Under the pieces are notes generated by a model. It ran no database searches. It was not told the origin of the DNA and was given only the letters and a program-made list of their open reading frames with translations. A stretch of 64,000 nt of DNA from assembly GCA_020536535.1 (NCBI GenBank), contig JAHLWZ010000817.1, positions 49,827-113,826 of the forward strand. Direction: 5' to 3'. Each line of letters starts with the position of its first letter. The first letter of the stretch is position 1. The DNA is from Pelomyxa schiedti. Lineage: Eukaryota > Protista > Evosea. This document shows positions 33,121 through 33,289 of the stretch, in pieces. The position numbers and the translations under genes are program-made.

Positions 33121-33289
33121 AGAGCACATCGACCGTGGCCCATTGCGTTCCGGAGGTTCGAATCCTCCACTACGTAAAAAACGTAGTTGCCCGAGTGGTT
33201 AAGGGGGCCGGCTCTAGACCGACTAACACCCGCAATCGTGCCAAGGCAGCAACCCATTCACCTCTCCTTCGGTCAATGTTCTTTTTTTT
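33121..33289 (+). ncRNA. Circularly permuted tRNA / tRNA-like structured RNA, anticodon CUA, Leu-type D-arm
   Basis: T-arm GGAGG-TTCGAAT-CCTCC (33152-33168); acceptor ACTACGT (33169-75), AAAAA, ACGTAGT (33181-87), a perfect 7 bp; TG; D-arm CCC-GAGTGGTTAA-GGG; anticodon arm GCCGG-CTCTAGA-CCGAC (33207-23); flanking complementary segments; T8 run at 33282-89. Confidence 0.85.
33282..33289 (+). terminator. Putative RNA polymerase III terminator (T8)
   Basis: Eight consecutive T residues immediately after the 3' strand of the terminal stem of the tRNA-like RNA. Confidence 0.55.

Follow-up and report, generated by a model that had tools for sequence, protein, structure and literature searches.

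The CUA triplet of this stretch lies in a tRNA-like RNA of about 215 nt (33073 to about 33286), which on balance we take to be a non-decoding tRNA mimic that has tolerated a point change, A35U, in its anticodon-like loop. All positions given without a contig name refer to the window, the 64,000 nt of Pelomyxa schiedti DNA that we analysed. By structure, the middle of the RNA resembles the body of a class II (Leu/Ser type) tRNA whose acceptor stem is capped by a five-base A loop, and a paired leader and trailer, ending in a terminal stem, replace the long variable arm. In the proposed mechanism, the mimic would be recognised, and perhaps cut and CCA-tagged, by tRNA enzymes, and would carry no amino acid to the ribosome. 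Its loop would have started as a copy of the Leu(CAA) loop, in which a change of A35 to U turned CAA into CUA; this change would have been tolerated because the triplet is not used for codon reading. The RNA unit has the following parts:

33073-33289 (+): whole transcription unit of the tRNA-like RNA, ~215 nt, set by the RNA 5' end, the T-run and the limits of paralogue similarity
33073-33080 (+): 5' strand of the terminal stem, GAGAGGTG, partner of 33259-33266 (CACCTCTC) in the MFE fold
33086-33096 (+): conserved leader block, ATATTGTGAGC, identical in the paralogue on contig C823
33142-33147 (+): leader strand ATTGCG, complementary to 33231-33236, in place of a long variable arm
33152-33168 (+): T arm, GGAGG TTCGAAT CCTCC, matched by model R1 at 71.9 bits
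33169-33187 (+): acceptor stem closed by a loop (3' strand 33169-75, A33176, AAAA at 33177-80, 5' strand 33181-87)
33190-33206 (+): D arm with a class II type loop, GAGTGGTTAAG; D stem kept in three copies
33207-33223 (+): anticodon-like arm, stem GCCGG/CCGAC with the mismatch C33208:A33222, loop CTCTAGA, triplet CTA at 33214-33216
33231-33236 (+): trailer strand CGCAAT, partner of 33142-33147
33259-33266 (+): 3' strand of the terminal stem, CACCTCTC, MFE-fold partner of GAGAGGTG
33282-33289 (+): run of eight T, a likely polymerase III terminator

The original prediction had placed the anticodon arm of a permuted tRNA at 33207-33223, and we observed the arm as claimed: GCCGG CTCTAGA CCGAC, with T at loop position 33, G at position 37 and the CTA triplet (33214-33216) inside the loop. 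The amber-suppressor feature itself is present, a CUA in a canonical 7-nt loop on a 5-bp stem (GCCGG/CCGAC) whose single mismatch is C33208:A33222. In the gene, the T arm and the acceptor 3' strand (33152-33176) come first, followed by AAAA and then by the acceptor 5' strand, the D arm and the anticodon arm (33181-33223). The permuted tRNA is opened in the variable region, between the end of the anticodon stem (33223) and the start of the T stem (33152). The acceptor stem consists of seven Watson-Crick pairs and is separated from the D arm by U8-G9. The bases of the tRNA tertiary contacts are in place (U8, A14, G18-G19, C48, T54-T55-C56 and A58); C48, immediately before the T stem, would pair with G15. 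When the 5' part, from 33181, was put before the 3' part, ending at 33176, ARAGORN recognised a tRNA with anticodon CTA at 459 of the 527 junctions tried. With the genomic order left as it is, ARAGORN called no tRNA, and neither did Rfam, whether in the whole window at the gathering score or in 32900-33500 at E values up to 10.

The arm belongs to a family of related genes. We searched the 52.4 Mb assembly (G000; copies are named here by contig) with a pattern made of a T loop, a closed stem and a class II D loop. The pattern matched seven loci and its reversed control none; a covariance model of the T arm, closed acceptor stem and D arm found at least 14 loci. The nearest paralogues are C823, with a duplicate on C3693, and C874. 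C823 is 74% identical to the window in the genome search and 80% identical over aligned columns. The exact 5' arm motif occurred, genome-wide, only in the window, in C823 with its duplicate C3693 and in C874.

Comparison of the three closest copies (window, C823 and C874) revealed a cloverleaf with 98.2% of its cells paired and 9 of its 19 pairs altered on both sides. All five pairs of the T arm were kept in the three copies, two of them with double changes, as were all six aligned pairs of the acceptor stem, three with double changes. The anticodon-like stem was compensatory in four of its five pairs, and the C33208:A33222 mismatch of the window was the sole unpaired cell of the entire cloverleaf. 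The acceptor sequences of all seven first-found copies differ, yet all of them pair, except for one mismatch in C1289. None of 500 shuffles matched the pairing and covariation values of the three-copy cloverleaf, and its pairing fell to 37-51% when the partner strands were slid out of register. By this comparison of the copies, the anticodon-like arm is a real arm and more than a chance hairpin, with a shape that is under selection.

The conserved unit, as judged by alignment of the copies, is longer than a tRNA and includes both leader and trailer. The terminal stem is retained in C823 with a different sequence (GGGAG..GGTG opposite CACC-CTCCC), and the ATTGCG/CGCAAT helix is kept there with one change of G-C to G-U. 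Similarity between the window and C823 starts near 33073, at the terminal stem, and stops at the T-run; the flanks of the window copy have no similarity to any of 12 paralogue loci. A T-run was found downstream of every copy whose 3' flank was inspected, which suggests that the RNA is probably a polymerase III transcript.

We then considered the RNA itself, using contigs of two single-cell RNA runs (X3 and X4), which as contigs cannot prove ends or absence. In an X4 contig, the SMART template-switch oligo is joined directly to 33073-33160. The RNA 5' end is thus at 33073, exactly at the predicted terminal stem, and the leader is therefore present in the RNA. An X3 contig covers 33080-33176 and ends one unmatched letter past the discriminator, A33176. 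An end, or a branch among the reads, seems a likelier cause of this stop than oligo-dT priming, because priming on the six genomic A would continue through 33181. The RNA contigs leave 33185-33338 uncovered, a stretch that includes the anticodon arm, and no back-joint was seen among the RNA contigs of the locus, which as contigs cannot show absence. The contigs of the tRNA-like RNA have depth figures above those of the neighbouring mRNA, depth being a poor measure.

If the RNA reads UAG, its anticodon might be kept in its relatives, a check proposed with the original prediction. We tested this and found that CUA is not kept. The loop of C823 is CCTGAAA, with triplet TGA and a C at position 33, and that of C874 is CTGCTAA, with triplet GCT; the stem is retained by compensation. 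U33 is near-universal in tRNA anticodon loops. Elsewhere in the family the triplets are CAG, TGT, AGT and GTT or there is no loop: three copies are opened within the anticodon stem and lack a canonical anticodon arm, and one of these three has an enlarged loop. The closest copies share an identical T loop and a nearly identical D loop despite the differing anticodon loops. The discriminators vary as well, being A in the window, C in C823, U in C874 and G in C68.

The loops are nevertheless not random with respect to the normal tRNAs of the genome. The loop of C874 is the Ser(GCU) loop, that of C68 is the Leu(CAG) loop and that of C823 is one base from the Ser(UGA) loop. As predicted, the window loop CTCTAGA is one substitution, at position 35, from the loop of the genome's own tRNA-Leu(CAA), CTCAAGA, and among the Leu and Ser loops of the genome only Leu(CAA) shares its G37-A38 flank. 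All readable class II type copies have Ser- or Leu-type triplets, which suggests selection on the loop. By their sequences, the loops copy isoacceptor loops and the discriminator bases do not: the normal tRNAs here have A73 in Leu and G73 in Ser.

The proposed link to tRNA-Leu stands in part. The D arm is genuinely of class II type and a single base separates the loop from that of Leu(CAA), but the discriminator on which the assignment also relied varies in the sister copies. The window RNA has A73 and shares six of seven loop positions with Leu(CAA), while its D loop, GAGTGGTTAAG, is that of Ser(GCU), not of Leu. Outside the generic D and T arms, the window module has no close match to any normal tRNA of the genome. 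Normal-order genes are present for tRNA-Leu (UAA, CAA, CAG, AAG and UAG) and for tRNA-Ser (AGA, UGA and GCU). We had entertained the idea that the permuted genes are the only source of class II tRNAs, and the existence of these normal-order Leu and Ser genes led us to reject it.

Some further features of the loop and of the family were recorded in passing. The letters TCTAGA at 33213-33218 are self-complementary, which would in principle allow loop-to-loop pairing between two copies of the RNA; no paralogue loop has this property. Among class I type members, one identical stem carries three different loops: CTTGTAA (C859), CTAGTAA (C1130) and CTGTTAA (C636 and C836). The two copies on C1130, at 8273-8334 (+) and 9065-9126 (-), are identical, inverted and about 800 bp apart; C636 (101220-101280) and C836 (27401-27461) hold an identical class I type pair on two contigs. 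The longer class I type members have a conserved trailer of about 190 nt. On C552, at 4840-4917 (-) (locus L086), lies a tRNA-Tyr(GTA)-like sequence that shares 87% identity with the normal Tyr gene, which contains an intron; additional letters lie in the 3' acceptor region of the sequence, and ARAGORN made no tRNA call on it. Neither a DNA search with the Tyr tRNA nor a pattern search returned a normal-order Tyr-type tRNA with anticodon CUA.

Permuted tRNA genes are known from Cyanidioschyzon merolae, prasinophyte green algae, the Bigelowiella nucleomorph and Thermofilum pendens (PMC3978253). Like them, the window gene has its 3' part upstream of its 5' part, a T-stretch after the gene and a short insert in the acceptor loop (4 nt, versus 1-74 bp in the known cases), and class II tRNAs are over-represented among the known cases (PMC3978253). 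There are also differences. Every known permuted tRNA gene forms a bulge-helix-bulge where leader and trailer meet, and the known cases pass through a circular intermediate and lose their short leaders (PMC3978253), whereas here the leader and trailer are long and conserved and the leader is still attached in the RNA seen. A scripted scan found no strict 3-4-3 bulge-helix-bulge in the window copy (shuffles average about two), and C823, C874 and C68 have none at a shared position. The known genes are opened at 20/21, 37/38, 50/51 or 59/60, and this one in the variable region. The host, moreover, is an amoebozoan with normal-order genes for the same isoacceptors; in the literature searched, we found no published report of permuted tRNA genes outside algae and one archaeon.

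An architectural counterpart is YrlA, a bacterial RNA in which a T arm, a closed acceptor stem-loop and a D arm lie within a longer RNA with paired ends (PMC4201824; Rfam RF02553). The window RNA has the same order of arms in the same kind of setting, and both keep the bases of the tRNA tertiary contacts. YrlA of Mycobacterium smegmatis, with its 7-bp acceptor stem, is an RNase P substrate to which CCA is added, and it is not known to decode (PMC4201824); a mimic can thus undergo both steps. Unlike the window RNA, which has a full anticodon arm, YrlA is bacterial, lacks that arm and adjoins the gene for Ro60 (rsr). The YrlA motif near the 5' end that binds Ro60, GNCGAAN0-1G, was absent in 12 of 12 copies checked. 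RF02553 had no match in the window at E values up to 10, and C790 scored only 21.5 bits.

The genome has a single TROVE-domain gene (C807, 26546-27809; locus L064). It is followed by DUF5920 and DUF4062 and for this reason resembles TEP1 rather than Ro60. No R1 match lies near it on C807, and a PDB sequence search with the TROVE piece gave no match. We therefore dropped membership in the Y RNA/Ro60 system, given the absent motif and an unlinked, TEP1-like TROVE gene, and kept the architectural analogy. Repeats of the major vault protein occur at five loci or more (C810, C516, C352, C518 and C850), which together with the TEP1-like gene makes it likely that vaults are present. Vault RNAs, which are bound by the TROVE protein TEP1, are small and are transcribed by polymerase III; like the window RNA, they have 5' and 3' ends that pair and box sequences of the tRNA A and B type. 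They differ in that the A box comes first and a cloverleaf is lacking. By this analogy, a vault-RNA-like role for the family is a lead.

Taken together, these results fit a non-translational mimic with an anticodon free to change, an option that the original prediction had named as its alternative, better than they fit a Leu-type amber suppressor supplied by processing. Loops and discriminators vary among the copies, the leader remains on the RNA, there is no splicing motif and the body is unlike that of the normal tRNAs; the suppressor claim is not borne out by these findings. Some observations pull against a mimic: the X3 contig ends one letter after the discriminator, the loops are non-random and the tertiary-contact bases, from U8 to A58, are all intact.

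If the family does decode, its RNAs rejoined or working as two pieces held by the leader-trailer duplex, the window RNA could be a crippled copy now being lost, its anticodon arm damaged twice, by A35U and by the C:A mismatch. Sister loops that match real Ser and Leu isoacceptor loops speak for this reading, as does the fact that the window copy is the only one with a nonsense triplet and holds the cloverleaf's sole unpaired cell; the copy would also be dispensable given the normal tRNA-Leu(CAA) genes. Yet the RNA is transcribed, with a contig depth above that of the neighbouring mRNA for what so poor a measure is worth, and all its other stems are intact, with compensatory changes relative to C823. 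The family-wide arguments against decoding (variable discriminators, retained leader, no splicing motif) apply as well, and we consider such decay unlikely. Should the family decode all the same, the nonsense triplet and the only stem mismatch make a crippled member likelier than a working suppressor.

How UAG is used in this genome bears on a working suppressor. TAG serves as an ordinary stop, as the original prediction had noted, at 1330-32, 32972-74 and 35041-43, the last being followed by TAA; 25 residues separate the end of the RTC domain from the TAG at 35041. We tallied in-frame stops in 105 kinase-domain matches: about 47 had none, and those with a single kind of stop had, roughly, TAG in 7, TAA in 10 and TGA in 8. 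Where a kinase match extends across introns, the three stop codons are about equally common. UAG is thus in normal use as a stop, with no sign of readthrough or reassignment in the kinase and RTC data.

In lab and natural amber suppressors, a single anticodon change suffices, for instance from Leu CAA to CUA. The window RNA shares with them the CUA in a 7-nt loop, U33, a purine at 37 and the distance of one substitution from Leu(CAA). Known suppressors have normal gene order, a free, chargeable acceptor end and proven readthrough, whereas the window gene encodes a closed acceptor hairpin. For it to act as a working suppressor, RNase P and RNase Z would have to open the acceptor loop, CCA would be added and the molecule, either in two pieces or trimmed and ligated, would be charged with Leu or Ser and read UAG at a low or regulated level. 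ARAGORN does accept the rearranged sequence as a tRNA with anticodon CTA; the RNA has U33, G37 and A73 and a loop that a single substitution separates from Leu(CAA); and it is expressed, with one contig ending a single letter past the discriminator. In E. coli, translation tolerates engineered amber suppressors whose variable arm carries a foreign hairpin at its tip (PMC7590224), so a two-piece or extended molecule is not barred from translation on physical grounds. Set against this, TAG acts as an ordinary stop, neither the anticodon nor the discriminator is conserved in the nearest homologues, the stem contains a C:A mismatch, the observed RNA retains its leader and the junction has no processing motif. 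We hold a working suppressor to be improbable. More improbable still is its specific form as a two-piece tRNA, with the acceptor loop opened by RNase P and RNase Z, CCA added and the halves held by the leader-trailer duplex, giving natural, dosage-limited UAG readthrough; since the gene adjoins that for RtcA, the supply of such a molecule could depend on RNA end-processing or repair.

An assembly or sequencing error at 33215, with Leu(CAA) as the true loop, is very improbable: a single base does separate the two loops and the genome comes from single-cell data, but an X1 DNA contig, probably the assembly's own data, agrees letter for letter over 32800-33290 at a depth of about 11 with no other letters, and the remaining arguments would hold even with CAA.

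When a nuclear tRNA-like gene carries CUA, it is tempting to claim a natural suppressor or a shifting genetic code; on present evidence the claim is unsupported here, and the result cautions against over-reading the nonsense anticodons of unusual tRNA-like genes. What is added here is that a single-base change in a mimic is the best reading of the nonsense triplet, that the RNA has its 5' end at the terminal stem, that the loops, unlike the discriminators, follow those of isoacceptors, and that TAG is in normal use as a stop. The conserved leader and trailer, the leader in the RNA and the isoacceptor-like loops with variable discriminators point to tRNA mimicry, which is known from bacterial Y-like RNAs; in the literature searched, no eukaryotic gene family of this kind is described. 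If the RNA were charged, it would be the first natural suppressor tRNA in two pieces or split in the variable arm.

Outside this genome, we scanned metagenomes with the pattern "T loop, 24-38 nt, class II D loop". The scan returned mainly bacterial and phage tRNA arrays and no relatives of the window RNA. Among 122 matches, 25 (loci L089-L208, for example L202:8773, + strand) had a perfectly self-paired 7-bp acceptor between the arms, a property with a chance expectation of about 0.1%. Several of these lie inside bacterial or phage tRNA arrays, in gaps without an Rfam tRNA call; they could represent either identical tRNAs in tandem or tRNA-like units in permuted order.

Just downstream of the tRNA-like RNA, at 33702-35085 (+), lies a gene for RtcA (RNA 3'-phosphate cyclase). 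RNA contigs reveal short introns at 33784-33852 (GC..AG), 33990-34044 and 34099-34141, and the RTC domain finishes within the final exon (34216-35043). The surroundings of the 12 paralogue loci contain nothing RtcA-like, so that only the window copy adjoins such a gene, and linkage to RtcA as a family trait was rejected. Right after the RtcA stop, at 35051-35093, stands an element of about 43 nt that contains AATAAA and occurs in very high copy number, with a DNA contig depth of about 11,000 versus about 9-12 nearby; many DNA and RNA contigs have only this element in common and differ in both flanks. Further along, at 59698-59981 (-), the window encodes a signal recognition particle RNA that matches Rfam Metazoa_SRP over the full model length (76.5 bits versus a gathering score of 70).
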